A model generated the notes under the pieces. The model worked only from the letters and a program-made list of their open reading frames with translations. It had not been told where the DNA came from and made no database searches. Position numbers and translations under genes: made by a program. A DNA stretch of 63,871 nt, the filler included, from Octopus bimaculoides (lineage: Eukaryota), in NCBI RefSeq assembly GCF_001194135.2. It is 5 parts of 4 records of this genome, joined end to end, with 100 filler letters (N's around TTAATTAATTAA, not from the genome) between each part and the next. Parts side by side here need not be neighbours in the genome. Positions count along the whole stretch, not along the records: positions 26,160 to 50,734 come from NC_068990.1; 4 more parts are not named here. One strand, written 5' to 3'. Position 1 is the first letter of the stretch, and each line of letters begins with the position of its first letter. Below, piece after piece: positions 26,290 through 49,925 of the stretch.

Positions 26290-26483
26290 ACTGGCCTTCG
26301 TGCCGGTGGCATGTAAAAGCACCCACTACACTCTCGGAGTGGTTGGCATTAGGAAGGGCATCCAGCTGTAGAAACTCTGCCAAATCAGATTGGAGCCTGG
26401 TATAGCCATCTGGTTCACCAGTCCTCAGTCAAATCGTCCAACCCATGCTAGCATGGAAAGCAGACGTTAAACGATGAAGATGA
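26290..26483 (+). mobile_element. RTE-type 3' tail
   Basis: gtgccggtggcatgtaaaagcacccactacactctcggagtggttggcattaggaagggcatcc... Confidence 0.75.
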
Positions 26484-26503
26484 ATAGTAATAATAATAAT
26501 AAT

Positions 26504-26720
26504 GGCTTCAAATTTCAGCACAAGGCCAGCAATTGTGGGGTGAAGGGTTAAGTCGATTACATCAACCTCAATATTCAACTGGTCCTTATTTTATCAACCC
26601 CAAAAGTATGAAAGACAAAGTCGACCTTGGTGGAATTTGAACTCAGAAACGTAAAGACAGATAAAATGCCACTTAACATTTTGCCCAGCGTGCTAACAAT
26701 TCTGCCAGCTCACCTCCTTA
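26504..26720 (-). mobile_element. SINE family B
   Basis: Full head, core and tail, with (AAT)n at the tail side. Confidence 0.85.
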
Positions 26721-26744
26721 ATACTAATAATTATAAGTATTATT

Positions 26745-27036
26745 ATTATTATCATTGCCTAACGCTGGAGATGTACTACAGTGTCAGCTGTTCACTACCA
26801 GTGAACTAAGGTAACACCCCTTATTTTTCGAGCACCTTCCAGAGTATTCCGGTGGTTCCAAGCAGTGCTGTTTTCTGCAAGTGCTCCACCCTTATTGCAG
26901 CCCCTATTTGTTCCACGTACTTCTCGAGATGTTTGCTCACTGTTCCCAGGGCTCCGACAATTATTGGTATTACTAGCACCTTTTTCATCGACCACAACTG
27001 CTTTACTTCCCAAGCTAACCTGTCATATCTCTCGAC

Positions 27037-27045
<9 letters not shown>
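26745..27045 (-). pseudogene. R4/Dong-clade LINE 3' end (restriction-like endonuclease C-terminus)
   Basis: RYDRLAWEVKQLWSMKKVLVIPIIVGALGTVSKHLEKYVEQIGAAIRVEHLQKTALLGTTGILWKVLEK* (stop 26821-26823). (TAA)n flanks both sides on the element's sense strand. Confidence 0.8.
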
Positions 27046-27070
<25 letters not shown>

Positions 27071-28143: not shown

Positions 28144-28345
28144 TCACTCACTCACTCACTCACTCACTCACTCACTCACTCACTCACATGACAGGCTTCT
28201 TTCAGTTTCCATCTACCAATTCCACTCACAAGGCATTGGTTGGCCAAGGTCTATAGTAGAAGACACTTGCCCAAGGTGTCATGCAGTGGGACTGAACCTA
28301 GAACCATGTGCTTGGGAAGTAAGTTTCTTACTACACAGCCACACT
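27998..28345 (-). mobile_element. SINE family A with (CA)n/(CTCA)n expansion
   Basis: Tail gtttcagacatttgactgcggccatgctgg and head ...ctacacagccacacttgcac. Confidence 0.8.
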
Positions 28346-28989: not shown

Positions 28990-29467
28990 GTTGGATCTTG
29001 TTGAGTCAAACTAGCCAACCCATGCCAGTAACCCTTTTAGGGTTGATGGAATAAGTACCGGTTAAATACTGAGGTTGATGTAATTGGCTTACCCCACCCT
29101 TCGAAATTGCTGGCCTTGTGCCAAAATTTGAAACCAATATTTAGGATGATGGTTTATAATGAACCCTCCCTCTGTTCTCTCTCTCCCCCTCCTATTCTCC
29201 CTTTCTCTTCTCTCTCTCCCTCCCTCTGTTCTCTGTCTCCCTCTTTCTTTTCTCTTTCCTCTTTCTCTACTCTCTCCTCTCTCCCTTTCTCTTCTCTCTC
29301 TCCCCCTCTCTCTGTTCTCTTTCTCTCTCCCCCTCTCTCTGTTCTCTTTCTCTCCTCTCTCTCTCCTCTCTCTCTGTTCTCTCTCCCTCCCTCTCTCTAA
29401 AATTCTACCTAATTCTTCATTTCCCATTTTTTCTCCCCTTTCTCATTCTTCTCTTTCTCTCCCAAAG

Positions 29468-29724
29468 GTTGCTTGACACTCATGGGAACAATTGTGATGG
29501 CAGTGAAAGGAAAAGATTACCTTTACGCCATGAAAACTCATAATTACCGAACAATAAACAATTTTCCAACTTTGACAAACGTTGACCTCACCGGACAATT
29601 AACGGTCGGCTGGTCCTTGGCCCTGGCCATAGTCTCTGGGTGCTTCACCCTGATAGGCTTTGGAATTTGGTTCACAGAATATCAAGTCTTAAAAACTGCT
29701 GAAGAAAACAACAATACCAGGTGA
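29468..29724 (+). CDS. Exon of a PMP22/EMP/claudin-clan tetraspan membrane protein (TM3, loop, TM4)
   Basis: Long pyrimidine tract plus cccaaAG acceptor at 29467. Phase-1 exon reads GCLTLMGTIVMAVKG...LTVGWSLALAIVSGCFTLIGFGIWFTEYQVLK, with the GWSxxLA motif typical of clan TM4. It ends either at TGA 29722-24 or at donor CAG|GTGAGG after 29720. Confidence 0.75.
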
Positions 29725-30974
29725 GGATAAAACAAAAAAGAAGAAAACTGGACAAAAAATAAAACAATTGGACAAAAAAAAATATTGAAAAGAAAAGAAA
29801 AAGAATACAAATGTTTGTTTTGAGAATCTCAGAACAAGAATTGATGATGTGTATGGAACATTTGGAGTCAAAAGATATATTTTTATTTATTTTGGTTTTT
29901 CTTGTTTTTATTTAATTTAAATTTTTTTTTAGTTTTATTTATTTATTTATTTTTGAAGATGAAGAAAAATTTTTTGAAGAAAAGGAAAAAAATATTTTTA
30001 AATGTTTTCTTTTTTTTTTAAATTTTATCTATATAATTTATAAATCTAATTNNNNNNNNNNNNNNNNNNNNNNNNNNNNNNNNNNNNNNNNNNNNNNNNN
30101 NNNNNNNNNNNNNNNNNNNNNNNNNNNNNNNNNNNNNNNNNNNNNNNNNNNNNNNNNNNNNNNNNNNNNNNNNNNNNNNNNNNNNNNNNNNNNNNNNNNN
30201 NNNNNNNNNNNNNNNNNNNNNNNNNNNNNNNNNNNNNNNNNNNNNNNNNNNNNNNNNNNNNNNNNNNNNNNNNNNNNNNNNNNNNNNNNNTTATTGACCG
30301 CTCCAAAAAGGTGAAAGGCAAAGTCGACCTCGGTGGAGTTTGAACTCAGAACATAGTGACAGGTGAAATACCATTAAGCATTTCGTCCAGTACGCTTATT
30401 AACTCTGCCAGCTCACCACTAAATAATAATAATAATAATAATAATCTTTTCTACTCTAGGCACAAGGCCTAAAATTTTGGGGGAGGGGGCCAGTCGATTA
30501 GATCGACCCCAGTATGCAACTGGTACTTAATTTATTGACCCTGAAAGGATGAAAGGCAAAGTCGACCTTGATGGAATTTGAACTCAGAACATAGTGACAG
30601 GTGAAATACCATTAAGCATCTCGTCCAGTGCGCTAATAACTCTGCCAGCTCACCACCTTAATAATAATAATAATAATAATCCTTTCTACTTTAGGCACAA
30701 GGCCTGAAATTTTTGGGGAGGGGAATAGTCGATTATACTGACGTCAGTACTCAACTGGTACTTCTTTTAAGAACAAAAAAAGAATCAGAAGAATACTTCT
30801 TCGAAATAATTCATTCTAATTTTGACACAAGGCCAGCAATTCTGAGGGGCAGGGGCCCTGAGAAGGTGAGCAAATCAATTACATCAACCCACGTACTCAA
30901 CTGGTACTTTATTTTATCTACCCTGAAGGAGTGAATAATAATAATGTTTCAAATTCTTTCAGCTCACTGTCTTC

Positions 30975-31010
<36 letters not shown>

Positions 31011-31851
31011 GTTTCTAATTTTTGACACAAGGCCAGTAATTTTGAGAAAAGGGTAGTTGATTACATCAACCCCAATGCTCAACTGGTGTGTATCTTATCA
31101 ACCCTTTATTGACCCCAGAATGGATGAAAAGCAAAGATGACTTTGATGGTATTTGAACTCATAATGTAAAACTAAAAGAAATATCTCTAAGCATTTTGTC
31201 CAAAACACTTCTGATTCATCATCATCATCATCATCATTTAATGTCCACCTTCCATGCTAGCATGGAACGGTTTTATAAGAGCTGGCCAGGCTGAAGTTTG
31301 CACCAGACTTCTGTGACTGTTTTGGTAGGATTTCTACAGCTGGATGCCCTTCCTAACACCAACCACCCAGCAGAGTGGACTTAGTGTTTTTTATGTGGCA
31401 CAGACACAAATTCTGCCTTAATAATAATCCTTTCTACCATAAGCACAAGGCATGAAATTTTGTGGGGAGGGGCCAGTCGATTACATCAACCCCCAGCCCT
31501 CAGCTGGTATTCATTTCATCAGCTCTGAAAGGATTAAGGGCAAAGTTGACCCCAGTGAAATTTGAACTCAGGACATAAGGAGCTGAAAGAAATGCTTAGT
31601 AGCATTTCATCCAGCTTCAGGTTCTACCAGCTCTCACCACCTTCTGAATTATAACAGCTTCAAATTTTGGCACAAGGCCAGCAATTTGGGGTGGTGGAGA
31701 TAAGTCAATTATATTGAACCCCATCATCAATCAACTGGAACTTAATTTATCAACCCTGAAAGGATGAAAGGCAAAGTTGACCTTGGTGGAATTTGAACTC
31801 AGAATATGCAGATGGACAGAATGCTAATGATCCTGCCAGCTTGCTGCTCAA

Positions 31852-32073
31852 CCCTTTTGTTACCAATCCAGCTGAAACTGGCTCTGGCTCTATTGTATAA
31901 ATGTTTTGTTTTCATAAGTTTTGAATTAAAATCTTCCACCAAACCTTAGTCACAATTTATGTTCCCAACGCTATCTTAATGATAACTAAGTTATTTTAAT
32001 AAATTCTTTGTTATATTTAAAATTAATTGAAAGAAACCCAGAGCATCTCAACAGAAATATGGTAATGAAAGGG
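31852..32073. mobile_element. piggyBac-type MITE
   Basis: CCCTTTTGTTACC...GGTAATGAAAGGG TIRs, flanked by TCAA and TTAA. Confidence 0.8.
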
Positions 32074-32102
32074 TTAATAATGATAATAATAATAATAATA
32101 AT

Positions 32103-32447
32103 GTTTTTTTATTGGCCACAAGGGCCGAACACAAAACAAAGAAGGACATAAAAAACTAGAGATATGAGGTTTATCACTAAAATCAAGTAAACAATAAAAT
32201 AATGATGACAATTAACAATACAATTAACCAATATAATTCACGCAGAACTGGGGGGAGTTCCTCACAGAGACAACCAAGGAACCCCCACACATTCTGGTTA
32301 TCCCGACCACCAGATGCACCTCTCTACTTCTCAACTCGTCCGGTTTACAACTAAGAGTTCAAAGTAGGCCCATTTTCATGGGTCATCCTTATTACATTCA
32401 CCCACCTATCAACAAATTTACTGAGGTGGTGGGGAAGAATTTCCCTA
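32103..32447 (-). pseudogene. 5'-truncated Tx1 LINE (last ORF2 codons plus 3' UTR)
   Basis: KFVDRWVNVIRMTHENGPTLNS* aligns with the C-terminus of the 5.9-kb Tx1 copy. Tail CCCTTGTGGCCAATAAAAAAAC followed by (ATT)n. Confidence 0.75.
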
Positions 32448-33222
32448 TAATAATAATCCTTTCTACTAAAAGCACAAGACCTGGAATTTTGGGGGAGGGA
32501 ACTTGTTGATTACATCAACTCCAACACTTAACTAGTATTTGTTTTATTGACCCCAAAAGGATGAAAGGCAAAGGTGACCTCTGCAGAATTTGAACTCAGA
32601 GAGTAAAGATGGACAAAATGCTGCTATGCATTTTGCCTGATACAGTAATGATTCTGCCAGCTCACTGCCTTAATTATAATAATAATCCTTTCTACTGGAA
32701 GCACAAGGCCTCAAATTTGGTGGGAAGGGATTAAGTCGATTACAATGGTCCCAGTGTATAACTGGTACCTATTTAATTGACCCCCCGAAAGAGTGAAAGA
32801 AAAAGTTGACCTCAGCGGAATTTGAACTCAGAACGTAAGGATGGACAAAATACCACTAAGCATTTCGCCCAACATGCTAACAATTCTACCAGCTCACCAC
32901 CTTTTTAATAATAATAATAATGATCATCTGGTGTACAAAGTGTGTTTAGTGATGGAATTAGTATGTGGTAGATGGGGGTGAGGGTAGCTGTGCAGTTAAG
33001 AAGTTTGTTTTGCAACAATATGATTCTAAGAGTGATCACAATGCACAACACCTTGCACTGGTATCTTTTACCGAAGCCTTGACTGACCAATGCTTTATGA
33101 ATGGAATCTAACCGGTAAGAAACTATGCAGAAGCCCATTATATATGCATACACTTGCGTGTGTGTGTGTGTGCATATGTATGTATATATATATATATATA
33201 TATATCTATATATATATATATA

Positions 33223-33460
33223 CTAGCAGCTAAGCCCGGTTTCACCTGGTCGGTTTGGATGATGTGGCTGTAAAACCTGCTCTGTGTAAACATTCAACTT
33301 GTTTGGCCACGCTTACATTAAAAAGCGATTTTAGAATGACTTTTTTCTGTCAAAATGCTAAAAATAACTGACCAACAAAAAAATACCAAGATTCAACCAA
33401 ATCAAAAAATGAACCCGAATACTAAATGAAGAAAGATTAACTATCCCACTTCCATGTACA
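33223..33460 (-). mobile_element. Helitron-like 3' end
   Basis: Minus strand: CCAGGTGAAACCGGG hairpin, then CTAG|T at 33223 beside (TA)n. The 5' limit is uncertain. Confidence 0.55.
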
Positions 33461-33974: not shown

Positions 33975-34347
33975 CTGGGCCAGTTGCAAAGTAACCCCTA
34001 CTTGTGTGATATCATGAAAAAAAAAAAAACGCCCAGTACGCTCTGAAAAGTAGTTGATGCTAGGAAGGGCATCCAGCCAGAGAAATCCTACCATAACAAA
34101 TAGCACAACAGTCCCCTGACTGAATGGATCATGTCAAATCATACCTGCACTGAGAGCATGTTAAATGATGCAGATCACCACATGCATACATACACACTGT
34201 AAAGCAGAACTTTTTAAATATATATTGTAAGCTCTACATGTGTGTATTGAGTACTTTTCCAGTGAATAGATGAACGTTTCATTATACGAGTTATAAAAAC
34301 ACATTAATACACAAACACGTGTGTGTGTATTTTTTTGCCAATGTATA

Positions 34348-35399: not shown

Positions 35400-35820
35400 T
35401 AGCCGATACCAGTGCCACCTGACTGGCTCCCATGCTGGTGGCATGCAATAAGCACCATTCATACGTGGGTTGTTGCCAGTACTGCCTAACTGACTCCCCG
35501 TGCTGGTGGCACATAAAAAACACTACCTGAATGTGGTTGATGCCAGCCCTGGCCCTGACTGGCACCTGTGCCAGTAGCACATTAAAAGCACTATCCGAAC
35601 GTGGCCAATGCCAGTGCTACCTGACTGGTTCCCCATGTTGTTGGCACGTAAAAAGCAACCACTCAGAATGGTTGGCATTAGGAAGTGGCATCCAGCTGTA
35701 GAAACATTACCAGATCAGATTGGAGCCTGGTAAGGCTTCCTGGCTTGCCAGTCCCCAGTCAAACCATGCAACCCATGCCAGATTGGAAAACGGATGTTAA
35801 ATGAGGATGATGATGATGAT
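35400..35820 (+). mobile_element. RTE-type 3' tail preceded by four tandem 68-bp units
   Basis: Units begin tgccag and contain (g/c)tggtggca; the tail ends in (GAT)n. Confidence 0.75.
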
Positions 35821-35824
35821 TATG

Positions 35825-36550
35825 GCTGGGAGATAACAGTTCGCTCAAGAGAGCTGCCCTCAACTGCCACCAAAGACTGGTCTGGAACCTGATGCATGCC
35901 AAGTGTCTCTGGGAAGATCTTTTTCCCTGTGTCCATGGAAGATCTCTGAACACCTCCTTGCCCTTGGCTACCAGCTCAGCCTTGGGGTTGCAGAAAACGG
36001 AGTTAATGTCTTTCTTAGCCATGCCCCACACATAGTAATCTAAAGGATTACAATCAGGGGAATTAAGATGCCAGAAATTCTCCAACAACCTCTTCTGAGT
36101 CTTTCTGGTGGTACAGCACCAAGCTGAATATTGCTGTCATGGATATGGCCTTCCAGCAACAACCCTCTCCAGCCAGGGATTGACCACAGTCTCCATCAGC
36201 TTCACAAAACTATCTGAATTGAGCCTCATTTCCTGTTCAAAGATGTGGGGGGCAGTATGACATCACCCTCAATGGAGACACACCCAAAGACCTACTGACC
36301 ACAGCCTCGTAGTCTCTGTTGCCGCTGTCCATGCCACATCTTACAGCTTTTATAGTGTTCATAAAGCTTTGAGCAGCAGTCATGATGTCAGCGTTTTGAT
36401 ACTCAGCCCAAATCATCATGATACAGGTAAATGTTTTCCAATATTCAAATGGCTTCCACTCCTCTGAGTCAGTAACTTTTCTCAACTACATCTTTAATCT
36501 TTATGCTCTTCAATGCTGTCGACTATTCACAAGGTGTTCCCAAAAGAAGG
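35825..36550 (-). pseudogene. Second maT/DD37D-like transposase remnant with internal deletions
   Basis: GCVSIEGDVILPHIFEQEMRLNSDSFVKLMETVVNPWLERV..., NSPDCNPLDYYVWG. Confidence 0.8.
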
Positions 36551-37303: not shown

Positions 37304-38247
37304 TTACCAACTGTTTTTCCTTGCTTGGGGTTAATTGAAGCAAAAGCTCTATGCCCAGATGCTCTTCCTGTTTGTCTTTTTTTAAGTTATGGATTTTTCC
37401 AGGGGAATTCAAAAGCACAGAGCCAATGGATGAAATGTCAATGAATGTCACTGTTTACAGCTCCATATCAGTTATAAACATTCCCATAGACAGACTTACA
37501 TATATATATATATAGAGAGAGAGAGATATGTATGTATATCAAAAGGATGTGTTATAATACTATTCCACAGCCACAATCCAATAATACTATTCCACATATA
37601 CACAAACAGCCATACCAACATCCAACATACCTCCATCAACAGCTTCCCCACGGATATCATTATGGTTTTGATACCTGGGCAGTACCATTCAATCCAGTGG
37701 TGCCAACAGCACTAAAATAAGTGTTGTTTGGTAACAAACAAACAAACCACAACTTTCAAACACATTTACCCTACGTACAACCATATTGATAAACAAATTC
37801 CATAAGTAAATTACAACCCCCTCCTAAATACATAACTAAACAGCAACAACTCTATACACATCATAACTGAAAAGCTCCGATTTCTAGGACTCAGAGTTGC
37901 TCATTTTCGATCTTCAGTTTTTTTAATAGGAAATAAGAACAAACATCTTGTCCTTAGACAAGATGTTTAACTCGATCTACAGCCTGAGGTTTTATGCATA
38001 ATAAAGACTTTATTTTTTACTCACTGGAAAAAAAAATTGTTTTGTTTTCGTTGGTATTTAATTCATTACGTTTGAGTCCAGTTTGCCATAATTTCTTATG
38101 TTTCACAGGTCACAAGCATCTAATTTGTCTCACACACATGCACAAGCAGACTTACATACATACATATGTATATATTGGGGGGAGTGCTATACAGATTTTG
38201 TATCCCTTTCAGGGGATTCATAATGAAAATAAACTATATGAATTATC

Positions 38248-38470
38248 TTCATCATCATCATCAGTTCACATCCACTTTTCCATGCTTGCATGGCTAACCA
38301 GAGCTTATTAAGGCTCGTTTTCTACAGTTTGATCCCGTTCCTGTCATACCTCTTGTTTCCAAGAAAGTAATATTTCTCCATGGCCAGACATGTTTTCATA
38401 GAAAACTGAAATAGAGAAGACATTGCTTGTCAGTTACAATCATTCATAACAATCACACAATGTCAAGAGA
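38248..38470 (-). mobile_element. RTE-type 3' tail (variant)
   Basis: (TCA)n followed by catccacttttccatgcttgcatgg. Confidence 0.6.
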
Positions 38471-39444: not shown

Positions 39445-40261
39445 CTGCTCATTGAAAAGTGAAAGAAACTGGAATACGATGATTACTTAATGCATTTTAT
39501 ATATACACTTTATATACTTTATGTACAATTTCATAGACTTAATACACAGCACTCACGAAATAAATATTTATGCTTCTTTTTCCATTTTCCCCATAAACAA
39601 AAATATCCCGTACATATGATACAACCTTTAGTTAAATTGCATATATCTGCCATGTAAATAAGTGTGAATATTTTGCGGATTTGCACTTACACGCATGCGT
39701 TAAGTGATGGGTGACATAAAAAAAACTTAGTTCGATTTTTAAAAATACACTTTCTCTATCCAATCACCATCATCTTCCCCCCCCCCCCCTCTCTCATTCT
39801 GTCTTTAATCTCACCATCAGAACAACACCCTTCTGCTAAAAATATATCCTTAACTCACCTCCCCTACCTTCAGCTTTTTTTTTAGCAACGTAACAAATAT
39901 TACTTTCGCCATACCTCACGTTGGACGCTTCTCTCTCTGTCTTTTTCTTTCTCCCTCTTCTGTCTTACTCTTCGCCTAATCCTCTTTTTCTCTCCCCTCT
40001 CTTTCCCTTCAACTAATCACGTGAAGGAGTTACTGATAAGCTACGTAACGCAATGATAAGCAGAATTACTATACAATACACACGTATTAATAATGTTACT
40101 AAGACAGTGTAGAACAGTTATCTCCCTTACATCTGGTGTCAGCAATGGCCGTTGATAGAGGAATGATGAGACGTGAAAGTCAAAGGAATTGAACTCGGCC
40201 ATTATCTTTCCGACGCTTTAATAATTATGCCACCTCGCCAGCTTGTAATCTAGTATAATAA

Positions 40262-40475
40262 TTGTTTCTACTTTAGGCACAGGTCTGTAATTTGTGGTGA
40301 GGGAGATTGTCGATTACATTGACCTCAGTACTCAACTGGTACTTATTTAATCGACGCCGAAAGGATGAAAGGCAAAGTCGACCGCGGTGGAATTTGAACT
40401 CAGAACGTAAAGACGGGTGAAAGGCCGCTAAGTATTTTGTCCGGTATGCTAACGATCCTGCCAGCTCGCCGCCTT
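40262..40475 (-). mobile_element. SINE family B
   Basis: Full head, core and tail. Confidence 0.85.
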
Positions 40476-41228
40476 ATGAGTTTGTATAATAATGACGTAC
40501 AGAAGAGAAAATAAATAAAACAAAATATCATTTTCTATGTAGAAGATGTTCCTGATGTACTTTTAACGTTATGGCGTTGTTGGTTGCTAAGCTCGAGTCA
40601 AACATGATCAGAGCAATAGTCGATGCTCTTGCCGTGACCATCTCGTCTTATTTGTCAAGTGTTTATCGTTTTTATAAAGCAGTCGTGGGATATAATTTGA
40701 GGAAAGTTCAGCGGTCATTTAAAGTCCCCCCCCCCCTCATACACACACTGACACATAACATAAGAACCATGCGACATACGGATTTTCTTAACTAGAGTAA
40801 TTAATAACTATCAGAAAAGATAACTCTTACGTAATACTGGATGAAGAGTTATCTCCCTTGCTCAACGATTTCCCAAGTATTTCAAAATCAAAAATATTAA
40901 TTTTTGAGAGTATCCACAATCATTAAAATTTCTTTCTGACCCCAACAACGAAGACTTGTTCTACTTCAGTGCTGAATATTATATCCTGCGTTGACGTATC
41001 TCAGTCTCAGACATACATGGCGTAAAAGAACCTAAATTATAAACATCCTTAGCAATAAGAAATTCTTACGAAGTTATTTCCAATAAATGTTTGTTTTATA
41101 CTGTACTTGATCGCATAACAGACGCAAAATCGTATGAGACACATCCGATTTCAGCAATGCGTATTCAGGAAAAAGAGCCTCAAAGACAAAGTTAGTGTAT
41201 GGGAGGCCAAACTTTGTTTTTAAAAAAG

Positions 41229-44654: not shown

Positions 44655-45381
44655 CGATTTTTTTATGTAGTGTTTTTGGTACCGAAACACTTTCAAACTT
44701 CGAATACTTGTATATTTTGTGTTACAGAACAGATAAAAAATTTTGTATTCGAAGTTATTTCATGTAAAAAATTGTCGTATTTCGGTAATTTCAACTAATC
44801 ACTGACTACGCCGTGGAATGTAAACAACGGTGTCAGGGGATTTTTTCCCTTGAATAAAATTAGTGCCGTTGTTTGTCAACAAAAACTATCCGTTGTCAAC
44901 AACAACTATCAGCGGTATATATTTCGTTTGTCACTGTTATTTATGACATCGTTCGTGCGTTTGTACTAGTTTTAGCTTTAGGGTTTTAGGGTTAGGGTTC
45001 GGGTCTTAGAGTTAGGGTTAGTTTTAGGATTACGGTTAGGGTTATGATTATTTTTGCCATAACCTTAACCCTAACCCTATAACTCATAACCATAACCCCA
45101 ACCCTAAAACCCGAACCCTAAAACCTTACTAGGGAATAATGATATAATTAAACAGGGAATAACACACTTGACACCGAACAGCACTAACTGTATTCAACTG
45201 AATAGACGTCAGTGATTGGTTGAAATTACAGAAAGACGACAACTTTAACTTTATTAAGAAGTAATTTTTGTTAAGAAGGCTAAGATAAAAAGATGTTTTA
45301 TATGACACATTCTACCAGTATCCCAAGTTTGAAAGTGTTTCGTTAAGAAAACAAGTGTTGCCTGTCAAACCAAAAAGATCC
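44655..45381. mobile_element. Foldback element with head-to-head (TTAGGG)n/(CCCTAA)n core, same family as 8298-8841
   Basis: The reverse complement of 45190-45350 matches 8325-8510. Right end is ...aaaaagatcc. TTAGGG-like at 44977-45046 faces CCCTAA-like at 45058-45125. The left end is uncertain. Confidence 0.75.
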
Positions 45382-45568: not shown

Positions 45569-46603
45569 TTAACGGTTTTGTAACTCAAAAAATCCAAACA
45601 CTCGCGTTACCTTTCTTCCATTAATCATTGTTACATCCGTCCTTAACANNNNNNNNNNNNNNNNNNNNNNNNNNNNNNNNNNNNNNNNNNNNNNNNNNNN
45701 NNNNNNNNNNNNNNNNNNNNNNNNNNNNNNNNNNNNNNNNNNNNNNNNNNNNNNNNNNNNNNNNNNNNNNNNNNNNNNNNNNNNNNNNNNNNNNNNNNNN
45801 NNNNNNNNNNNNNNNNNNNNNNNNNNNNNNNNNNNNNNNNNNNNNNNNNNNNNNNNNNNNNNNNNNNNNNNNNNNNNNNNNNNNNNNNNNNNNNNNNNNN
45901 NNNNNNNNNNNNNNNNNNNNNNNNNNNNNNNNNNNNNNNNNNNNNNNNNNNNNNNNNNNNNNNNNNNNNNNNNNNNNNNNNNNNNNNNNNNNNNNNNNNN
46001 NNNNNNNNNNNNNNNNNNNNNNNNNNNNNNNNNNNNNNNNNNNNNNNNNNNNNNNNNNNNNNNNNNNNNNNNNNNNNNNNNNNNNNNNNNNNNNNNNNNN
46101 NNNNNNNNNNNNNNNNNNNNNNNNNNNNNNNNNNNNNNNNNNNNNNNNNNNNNNNNNNNNNNNNNNNNNNNNNNNNNNNNNNNNNNNNNNNNNNNNNNNN
46201 NNNNNNNNNNNNNNNNNNNNNNNNNNNNNNNNNNNNNNNNNNNNNNNNNNNNNNNNNNNNNNNNNNNNNNNNNNNNNNNNNNNNNNNNNNNNNNNNNNNN
46301 NNNNNNNNNNNNNNNNNNNNNNNNNNNNNNNNNNNNNNNNNNNATTTCTTCTTCCGTCACCATTTCAATTTTACCGGTTTCGACAGCCTGTGTACGATAC
46401 ACTACTGTCCTCAGAATCTTATTTTCTTTAGTCTCTTTTGGGGGACACAATTTGTACGAGTTTCCCTCAACTTCTATCAAATTCCTGCTTCTGGTCACCT
46501 CCTCCATATCCAACTTGATTAACTTGGTTTCCAGCGGCACTGGCTTCCTCACCGCAGTGGCCTTGGCGTAGCTCTCCATACTGGAGACACTACCACTTGC
46601 CAT
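45569..46603 (-). pseudogene. LINE ORF1-like 5' region (probably Tx1/L1 group), spans an N gap
   Basis: MASGSVSSMESYAKATAV...RTVVYRT...; after the gap TDVTMINGRKVTRVFG resembles the pre-knuckle segment of L1/Tx1 ORF1. Continuity across the gap is unproven. Confidence 0.45.
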
Positions 46604-48971: not shown

Positions 48972-49390
48972 TAAGGCGGCGAGATGGCAGAAATGTTAGC
49001 ACGCTGGGCGAAATGCTTAGCAGTATTTCATCTGTCTTTATGTTCTGAGTTCATATTCTGCCGAAGTCGACTTTGCCTTTCATCCTTTCGGGGTTGGTAA
49101 ATTAAGTACCAGTTGCATACTGGGGACAATCTAATCGATTGGCCCCCTCCCCAAAAAATGTCGGGCCTTGTGCCTAGTGTAGAAAAGAATCGTTAACACG
49201 ACGGGCAAAATGTTTAGCGGCAGTTGGTTCGTCTTTATATGTTCTGATTTCAAATTCTGCCGAGGTCGACTTTGCCTTTCATTCTATTCGGGAGCAATAA
49301 AATATGTACCAGTTGATTACTGGAATCGGTGTAATCGACTTACCCACTCCCCCACCTAGACTTGCTGGCCTTGTGCTTAAATTAGAATTC
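48972..49390 (+). mobile_element. Two tandem family B SINEs
   Basis: First copy at 48972-49187 runs straight into a head-clipped second copy. Confidence 0.85.
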
Positions 49391-49714
49391 AATATGATTC
49401 GTTTAGCTTCTAAGAAAACCATGATCAAAAACAGCTTTCCAGCATTTTTACTCGGACACAGTGTACCTGGGACTACGTTATTCTGTGTGTCCTTACACTT
49501 TTTTTAAGACAGTAGAGGTTACAATTTGGCTGTTATTTCTCACAGATCGAGCAACCACACAGAGCCTCATCCCGTCACTACCGTCGACTGGAGTTGAGTG
49601 CTGCTGTTTAGCTCTAGGTCGACCGTCGTTGAGCAAACCTTGGGTCATAGACGTGATCATCTTGTCTTTCCGTGGTGTTTCTTGGACTACCTGATCTGTT
49701 CGATTATTATTATT

Positions 49715-49925
49715 GAACTGACAGAATCGTTAGAGCGTGGGAAGAAATGCTTGCAGTGTATTTCTTGCAGTCTTTTACGTTCTAGGTTCAAATCCTGCCG
49801 AGGTCAACTTTACCGTTTATCCTTTTGGGGTCGATAAAATAAAGTACTAGTCCAAGTACTGGTTCGAAGAATCCATTCACTCTGCCTCTAAAAGCTACTG
49901 GCCTTGTGCCAAAGTTTGAAACAGT
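49715..49925 (+). mobile_element. SINE family B (diverged)
   Basis: gacagaatcgttag...ggttcaaatcctgccgaggtcaac...ggccttgtgccaaagtttgaa. Confidence 0.75.

Follow-up and report, generated by a model that had tools for sequence, protein, structure and literature searches.

That the tail of one retroposon can serve as the target of the next is a principle already familiar from Alu/L1 and from target-specific long interspersed nuclear elements (LINEs). New Alus reportedly insert into the A-rich tails of older Alus, a finding ascribed to Jurka (1997) and Levy et al. (2010), and UnaL2/UnaSINE1, attributed to Kajikawa and Okada (2002), is said to be a stringent pair of a LINE and a short interspersed nuclear element (SINE). 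In CR1- and L2-type stringent pairs, stem-loops with compensatory changes have been described (PMC4824008). Microsatellite-specific LINEs include Dong for (TAA)n, Kibi for (TC)n and Koshi for (TTC)n (PMC3812793). Across Kibi, Koshi and crocodilian Tx1 families, the targets are (TC)n, (TTC)n, (TTCC)n and (TTTC)n, with (TTA)n not among them, and Tx1-Mar mobilises SINEU; SINEs can have the target of their Tx1 partner and stack on one another (PMC4494074). LINEs of the Dong-R4, RTE, CR1 and L1-Tx1 types have all been reported from octopus genomes (PMC13282606, PMC9115989). Here, we describe a pile of same-strand SINEs at positions 30292-32921 of a 63,871-nucleotide stretch of joined Octopus bimaculoides sequence (the window), which probably arose by successive insertions into (TTA)n tails, and compare it to these systems. 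The piece examined, positions 26160-50734 from NC_068990.1, has a G+C content of 38% and is interrupted by three assembly gaps within 24 kb.

The array comprises ten copies of a ~215-bp SINE, here termed SINE-B (copies A to J), a nested SINE from a different family and a LINE-like 3' fragment (Table 1). The minus strand carries all 12 elements (two-sided p = 5e-4) and, when this strand is read 5' to 3', the joints between them are mostly (ATT)n in element sense. The head-to-tail, one-strand stack of about ten SINEs announced in the original prediction is, thus, confirmed; ten is a minimum count, since the N gap at 30052-30290 truncates the array. No SINE-B copy lies upstream of the (ATT)5 that precedes copy J, which may, therefore, be what is left of the founding target or else a target-site duplication (TSD). 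The 5' flank of copy H is not (ATT)n, and H would accordingly be the founder of the second of two blocks.

SINE-B has a consensus of 215 bp, with 19 copies or fragments in 23.5 kb that share mutual identities of 67-94%. These copies are dispersed, diverged and without coding capacity, as expected of a SINE, and display the hallmarks that target-primed reverse transcription (TPRT) leaves, namely variable 5' truncation (C, D, S5, S6, S7 and S8) with an intact 3' end, a simple-repeat tail, which is (ATT)n on most copies, and, in S2, a TSD. Orientation is secure, since each truncated copy lacks the head end and retains the tail end. ARAGORN at default settings and Rfam made no call on the SINE-B head; at relaxed thresholds, ARAGORN placed a cloverleaf at consensus positions 13-92, and GAGTTCAAATTCC looks like a B box. 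Two 3'-end subtypes, ...AGGCCTTGTGCCTAAAGTAGAAAGG (subtype 1) and ...TGGCCTTGTGCCAAAATTTGAAGCC (subtype 2), are interleaved. The head pattern had no match in metagenome, viral and prokaryote genome collections. The sequence ATTATTATT occurs 48 times in the window as opposed to 0.77 expected from dinucleotide-preserving shuffles, and almost all (AAT)n/(ATT)n runs of the piece adjoin one of these retroposons.

A profile search of the other 20.8 kb returned nine more SINE-B copies or fragments, five on the minus and four on the plus strand. With ten copies in 2.6 kb, as against nine in the remaining 20.8 kb, the array is ~9-fold denser (Poisson p = 4e-7). An abundant SINE might simply gather by chance or tolerance, for example in an intron under selected antisense bias. 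Such bias of retroposons in introns is common, and the piece is SINE-rich, with other families accompanying the 19 SINE-B copies. The density excess and the uniform strand of all 12 elements nonetheless render passive accumulation highly improbable, as do the exact tail-to-head contacts in one polarity, which orientation selection does not produce. The gene model that would provide the intron is also unsupported, as discussed below.

With the exception of the pair A-B, the array consists of independent retropositions and not of tandem duplicates. Median pairwise identity was 74.7% among array copies, and comparison of array with dispersed copies gave 75.7% (Mann-Whitney p = 0.74); array pairs other than A-B are 69-82% identical. 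Copies begin at consensus positions ~1, ~105 or ~125, one is internally deleted and one is split by the nested SINE; spacers and truncation points vary, and a common period is absent. We conclude independence because identities are no higher than to dispersed copies, truncations differ and two 3' subtypes occur. A unit of SINE plus tail would instead have been amplified locally had copies been duplicated in tandem or had (AAT)n tails crossed over unequally. For the whole array, this scenario is refuted by the identities and differing truncations, with pairs other than A-B being no closer to each other than to copies 4-18 kb away, and it deserves next to no weight. A single clade of tandem duplicates, named beforehand as the pattern that would speak against targeting, could accordingly apply to no pair but A-B. 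These two copies are 93-94.5% identical over 130-146 nt, carry similar tails ((AAT)8 and (AAT)7) and have in common 14 derived states, in which most of the other copies differ from them. They may have been inserted separately from the same young source, or their tails may have undergone unequal exchange locally; duplication limited to this pair has a little less than an even chance.

To describe 5' junctions, we termed strict those with a perfect sense-polarity (ATT)≥3 run ending ≤6 nt upstream of the element. A random site and strand in the piece qualifies with a chance of 0.48%, and 9 of the 19 SINE-B or LINE-like junctions did so (A, B, D, E, F, I, J, the LINE-like fragment and S6; p ~ 1e-16). 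The repeat within ≤6 nt upstream had tail polarity at nine junctions and the opposite polarity at none. Its phase was also constant, with ...ATT standing directly before the element in every positive junction. Among the ten copies without such an element upstream, two were strict (J and S6; p ~ 1e-3). Two more leading or solo copies nearly qualified: S1 follows a degenerate (TTA)6, and S2 is bracketed by the TSD ATTATTATAC, which implies that its pre-insertion site already read ATTATTATA. Microsatellite-specific retrotransposons that lack long terminal repeats (non-LTR) have been delimited by presence of the target in >20% of flanks (PMC4494074); our values were 9/19 (47%) for strict junctions and 2-4/10 for copies without an upstream retroposon, a very small sample. 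Targeting of (TTA)n, renewed by each insertion, is the best reading because the 5' flanks are enriched in (ATT)n of tail polarity, even where no SINE lies upstream.

The same junctions could arise without any target preference if the piles were concatemers made in single events, with the reverse transcriptase leaving one SINE or LINE RNA, at its 5' end or within it, and continuing on the (AUU)n 3' end of a second, or if a read-through RNA polymerase III transcript spanning at least two SINEs were copied. LINE reverse transcriptases are known to jump between templates (R2, L1 chimeras), and the T4 terminator of this polymerase is absent from (ATT)n. The constant ...ATT junction phase is what jumps onto RNA 3' ends would produce. 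Concatemer formation could likewise account for the fusion of tail-less S4 to S5, which begins at consensus ~17. This pair is flanked by a common ATG(A)TTCGT (ATGTTCGT and ATGATTCGT), and either the entire S4 tail was consumed by S5 or the dimer formed in a single event. Within the array, the block J-I-LINE-like fragment lies between two occurrences of ATCATTATT, which may be a TSD; such a block TSD is equally expected from later landings in internal tails. At least ten jumps in one event would, moreover, lack precedent, and tail decay is very uneven, ranging from perfect (ATT)7-11 to TTATAATTCAG. The similarity of A and B, far above that of other pairs, suggests different ages, and S2 and S6 each stand alone at a site that contains ATT. 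On balance, we regard concatemers as a distinctly unlikely origin of the array, although individual sub-blocks may have formed in this way.

A further connection between SINE-B and the LINE-like fragment emerged at their 3' ends. The fragment terminates in ...TCGGCC-CTTGT-GGCCAATAAAAAAAC-(ATT)n, where a hairpin, GGCC-CTTGT-GGCC, is followed by AATAAAAAAAC and the tail. SINE-B ends in a 4-bp stem with a CTTGT loop (50/52 cells paired), and the outer pair of this stem (pair 4) covaries between subtypes, being A-T in five cases and T-A in four. Both stems are of equal length with the same loop and differ by two compensatory pairs; in both, the stem sits on a C.A mismatch, and the spacer that leads to (ATT)n is 8-9 nt long. 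The piece has 50 CTTGT sites; four Watson-Crick pairs close just 6 of them, namely those at five SINE-B 3' ends and in the fragment. SINE-B and the fragment, thus, have the common 3' stem-loop and tail repeat that characterize stringent pairs, and the CTTGT hairpin may function as a recognition module common to a LINE/SINE pair of this type.

The fragment had originally been labelled a 5'-truncated Tx1 copy, but we found no feature in it that identifies Tx1. It contains stops in all three sense frames, and a second copy was not found in the piece. Its longest open reading frame (ORF; 42 aa) gave 0 HMMER matches among 1.84 billion representative proteins, and no ORF lies within ~120 nt of the tail in this single, decayed copy. 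The accompanying statement that some Tx1 families are microsatellite-specific is established in the literature (PMC4494074).

We propose that TPRT built the array, acting on a single SINE family and a single LINE-like element that both end in a small hairpin and an (AUU)n tail. The machinery of the partner LINE, with its endonuclease, would nick the (AAT)n strand of the (TTA)n.(TAA)n duplex, and the freed 3' end would pair with the (AUU)n tail of the RNA, where reverse transcription would begin. Tail pairing would set the orientation and place the new copy in or right after an (ATT)n run, leaving (ATT)n on both sides. Each insertion would add a tail, probably along with a second copy of part of the target, creating a larger target and, ultimately, a head-to-tail pile. 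Pairing between tail and target at the start of TPRT and a tail-dependent cleavage site have been documented for other LINE/SINE pairs, of the RTE type (PMC6007223). Bov-B copies are seldom flanked by their own repeat (PMC13295347), and the behaviour of SINE-B is, therefore, nearer to Alu insertion into Alu tails and to target-specific LINEs. Tail-directed stacking is what elements of this kind are expected to do, and it involves no new mechanism. Stepwise stacking of this kind on (TTA)n, by repeated independent TPRT, is the best-supported reading, and we judge it moderately probable.

Several points weigh against stepwise stacking. The evidence comes from one locus with 19 junctions in 24 kb. 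Most positive junctions are contacts with the tail of the upstream copy and, therefore, restate the clustering, so that independent support for a target preference comes from two to four solo or leading copies; even there, the (ATT)n before leading copies could stem from a template jump onto the tail of another RNA. Seven SINE-B copies (H, C, S3, S4, S5, S7 and S8) have no upstream (ATT)n, which argues for a strong preference but not strict specificity; this preference could reside in the endonuclease or solely in primer-tail pairing. The predicted self-renewing (TTA)n targeting, therefore, stands as a flank bias that includes J and S6 and nearly S1 and S2, and falls as a strict rule. The pair A-B may be a local duplication. 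The hairpin match between SINE-B and the fragment was noticed post hoc, a plain alignment of their 3' ends was not significant (56/500 shuffles equalled it) and a partner LINE with an ORF was not found in the piece. Finally, the array adjoins one of the gaps of this scaffold, and the most similar copies, A and B, are those beside it. A short-read assembly might have collapsed or mis-chained SINE copies at such a place. The array copies, however, are 18-30% diverged, with distinct truncations and unique spacers, and an assembler would not mis-chain reads of this kind; furthermore, the smaller same-strand stack S4-S5 and S6, which follows 310 bp later in the same orientation, occupy an ungapped stretch. 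We, therefore, consider an assembly artefact very improbable.

A second user of the same microsatellite is present at 26757-27036. Its C-terminal ORF reads ...LQKTALLGTTGILWKVLEK*, and relatives with 76% amino-acid identity were located on two ENA contigs of another organism (L001, 9658-10329; L002, 8778-10280), where they are likewise 5'-truncated and lie between (TAA)16-20 and (TAA)n. Each contig represents a 20-kb locus with many long (TAA)n/(TTA)n runs; SINE-B is absent from both. Just upstream on L002, an ORF has a CCHC motif and, after it, RKPD...D...K, by which restriction-like endonucleases are recognised. Together with the sense (TAA)n flanks, this suggests by motif and flank comparison that the copy is a Dong/R4-like LINE. 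Searches of the Dong-like ORFs against Pfam and PDB returned one weak zf-RVT match only. Dong is known from insects, molluscs and cnidarians as a LINE specific for (TAA)n (PMC7998251, PMC3812793), and its sense strand carries (TAA)n upstream, as a published primer shows (PMC3774820).

The Dong-like copy directly adjoins the degenerate (TTA)6 before S1, with the repeat polarity flipping at ~26737. Both LINE and SINE-B, thus, use and renew one duplex microsatellite in opposite polarity, as neighbours at 26488-27069. The likeness to Dong, whose copies are repeat-flanked on both sides, extends to the identical duplex; however, the Dong sense strand is (TAA)n, whereas that of SINE-B and the LINE-like fragment is (TTA)n/(ATT)n, and the 3' untranslated regions (UTRs) are unrelated. 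The Dong-like 3' UTR (26757-26825) has no SINE-B similarity and no CTTGT hairpin. Opposite repeat polarity and unrelated 3' UTR rule out Dong as the SINE-B partner.

Other systems resemble the array in different respects. As in Alu/L1, the SINE tail is complementary to the primer strand at the nick site and an old tail is a preferred target, with head-to-tail pairs and clusters in one orientation as the outcome. The SINE-B tail, however, is a trinucleotide repeat, (ATT)n, instead of poly(A), the 3' hairpin makes RNA recognition probably of the stringent type and a pile of at least ten copies exceeds the usual Alu pile. The Tx1 families provide a precedent for microsatellite-targeted LINEs of the apurinic/apyrimidinic endonuclease (APE) type, whose SINE has the target of its partner and where SINE and LINE copies flank each other; a (TTA)n-specific Tx1 is not reported in that study, and the SINEU tail is poly(A) (PMC4494074). 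UnaL2/UnaSINE1 and the CR1/L2 pairs combine LINEs and SINEs with a common short 3' stem-loop and a subsequent tandem-repeat tail, but a target preference for their own tail repeat is not reported. In RTE LINEs and their SINEs, which include elements active in octopus, a microsatellite tail influences the cleavage or priming site (PMC6007223, PMC13295347, PMC9115989). The 3' UTR of RTE elements is very short, in contrast to the at least 120 nt of non-coding 3' sequence in the LINE-like fragment. A more far-reaching idea, which we regard as rather unlikely, is that the array was produced by an undescribed LINE/SINE pair, defined by the CTTGT hairpin and (AUU)n and specialised on the (TTA)n strand of the Dong duplex, with a Tx1 or other APE-type LINE as the autonomous member. 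The two unrelated lineages would then keep creating targets, each for itself and for the other, and drive runaway 'SINE trains' and much of the AAT/ATT microsatellite load of this genome.

Should the bias hold genome-wide, it would account for same-strand SINE piles in a SINE-rich genome and for the tight association of AAT/ATT microsatellites with SINEs. It would also add (TTA)n, with a polarity distinct from that of Dong, to the microsatellite targets of non-LTR elements, and the hairpin plus (ATT)n would offer a handle on the autonomous partner of a major SINE family. SINE piles also favour unequal exchange and assembly gaps and interfere with microsatellite markers.

Table 1 Retroposon copies, tails and spacers in the piece. 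Array rows are in the 5' to 3' order of the minus strand, followed by dispersed copies and other families.
Feature	Position	Strand	Remarks
Upstream (ATT)5	32903-32921	-	Directly 5' of J, sense polarity; ATCATTATT recurs at 32075-32083
SINE-B copy J	32688-32902	-	Full length; 3'-end subtype 1
J tail	32673-32687	-	(ATT)3ATAATTA; doubles as 5' flank of I
SINE-B copy I	32459-32672	-	Full length; subtype 1
I tail	32448-32458	-	(ATT)3; doubles as 5' flank of LINE-like fragment
LINE-like 3' fragment, 345 bp	32103-32447	-	5'-truncated; stops in all frames; 3' part AT-rich
LINE-like fragment tail	32075-32102	-	(ATT)6 ATC (ATT)2
224 bp, single-copy in piece	31851-32074	.	Divides block J-I-LINE from block H...A
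SINE-B copy H	31655-31850	-	Subtype 2; internal deletion; 5' flank not (ATT)n
H tail	31644-31654	-	Degenerate, TTATAATTCAG; stands before G
SINE-B copy G	31429-31643	-	Full length
G tail and F head remnant	31410-31428	-	(ATT)3, then AAGGCAGAAT (F remnant 31410-31420)
Other-family SINE, (ATG)7 tail	31216-31409	-	Nested in F head, splitting F at consensus ~22; copy of (ATG)n-tailed family
SINE-B copy F, main part	31010-31207	-	Subtype 2
F tail	30975-31009	-	(ATT)11.7, perfect
SINE-B copy E	30947-30974	-	28-nt remnant; 22 nt head fused to 7 nt 3' end (internal deletion)
E tail	30934-30946	-	(ATT)4; doubles as 5' flank of D
SINE-B copy D	30817-30933	-	5'-truncated at consensus ~105; subtype 2
49-bp spacer	30768-30816	.	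Degenerate D tail and unassigned sequence; 5' flank of C without (ATT)n
SINE-B copy C	30681-30767	-	5'-truncated at consensus ~125; subtype 1
C tail	30660-30680	-	(ATT)7
SINE-B copy B	30446-30659	-	Full length; nearest to consensus (89%)
B tail	30422-30445	-	(ATT)8
SINE-B copy A	30292-30421	-	5' 130 nt only; cut by N gap 30052-30290
SINE-B S1	26504-26719	-	Solo; degenerate (TTA)6 upstream; (ATT)5 tail
SINE-B S2	40249-40494	-	Solo; bracketed by 10-nt direct repeat ATTATTATAC (TSD)
SINE-B S4 and S5	48973-49393	+	Full-length tail-less S4 fused directly to 5'-truncated S5
SINE-B S6	49715-49921	+	Solo; slightly 5'-truncated; with directly upstream (ATT)4, 49703-49921
SINE-B S7	29023-29141	+	5'-truncated
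Dong/R4-like LINE 3' end	26757-27036	-	5'-truncated; own-sense flanks (TAA)11 upstream, (TAA)5 downstream (26738-27069)
(ATG)n-tailed family copy	26315-26487	+	Body 26315-26483
(ATG)n-tailed family copy	34024-34098		
(ATG)n-tailed family copy	35669-35820		
(ATG)n-tailed family copy	38245-38293		

The array had been placed antisense in an intron of a claudin-like gene. This gene model found no support, as its putative exon, an 83-aa ORF with a hydrophobic stretch at 29473-29724 (+), has neither a Pfam match nor a homologue. A clean 86-aa ORF starting with Met is present at 46346-46603 (-) and runs into the gap at 45649-46343; here too, the word-index protein search used for both ORFs yielded no homologue, and no Pfam domain was detected. 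An ORF fragment at 35759-36088 (-) with the motif NSPDCNPLDYYVWG gave no Pfam match, and we take it to resemble the C-terminal part of a mariner/Tc1 transposase.

Other repeats surround the SINE-B copies. A second abundant SINE-like family carries an (ATG)n/(TGA)n end after ...CCATGCTAGCATGGAAAGCAGACGTTAAA, and one of its copies meets S1 tail to tail at 26484-26503. Adjoining the copy at 35669-35820, a 68-bp unit with the motif GGCACATAAAAAACAC is repeated 3.5 times (35418-35654); GGCACATAAAAAACAC also occurs in the 5' part of this SINE family. A third SINE-like family, with a (TG)n(TA)n end, lies directly beside the array at 32960-33222 (+), with a weaker copy at 28219-28345. Rfam matches to mir-297 and mir-1277 at 33158-33231 fall on the microsatellite of this family below gathering scores and were taken as chance. 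The same applies to MIR8706 matches, also below the gathering score, on an inverted pair of degenerate telomere-like repeats at 44969-45125, which is (TTAGGG)n-like to ~45050 and (CCCTAA)n-like from ~45057. A head-like fragment at 40208-40248 comes after S2, and a long, impure (TC)n array, CT-rich with a 27-61-bp periodicity, extends just downstream of S7 at 29164-29398.

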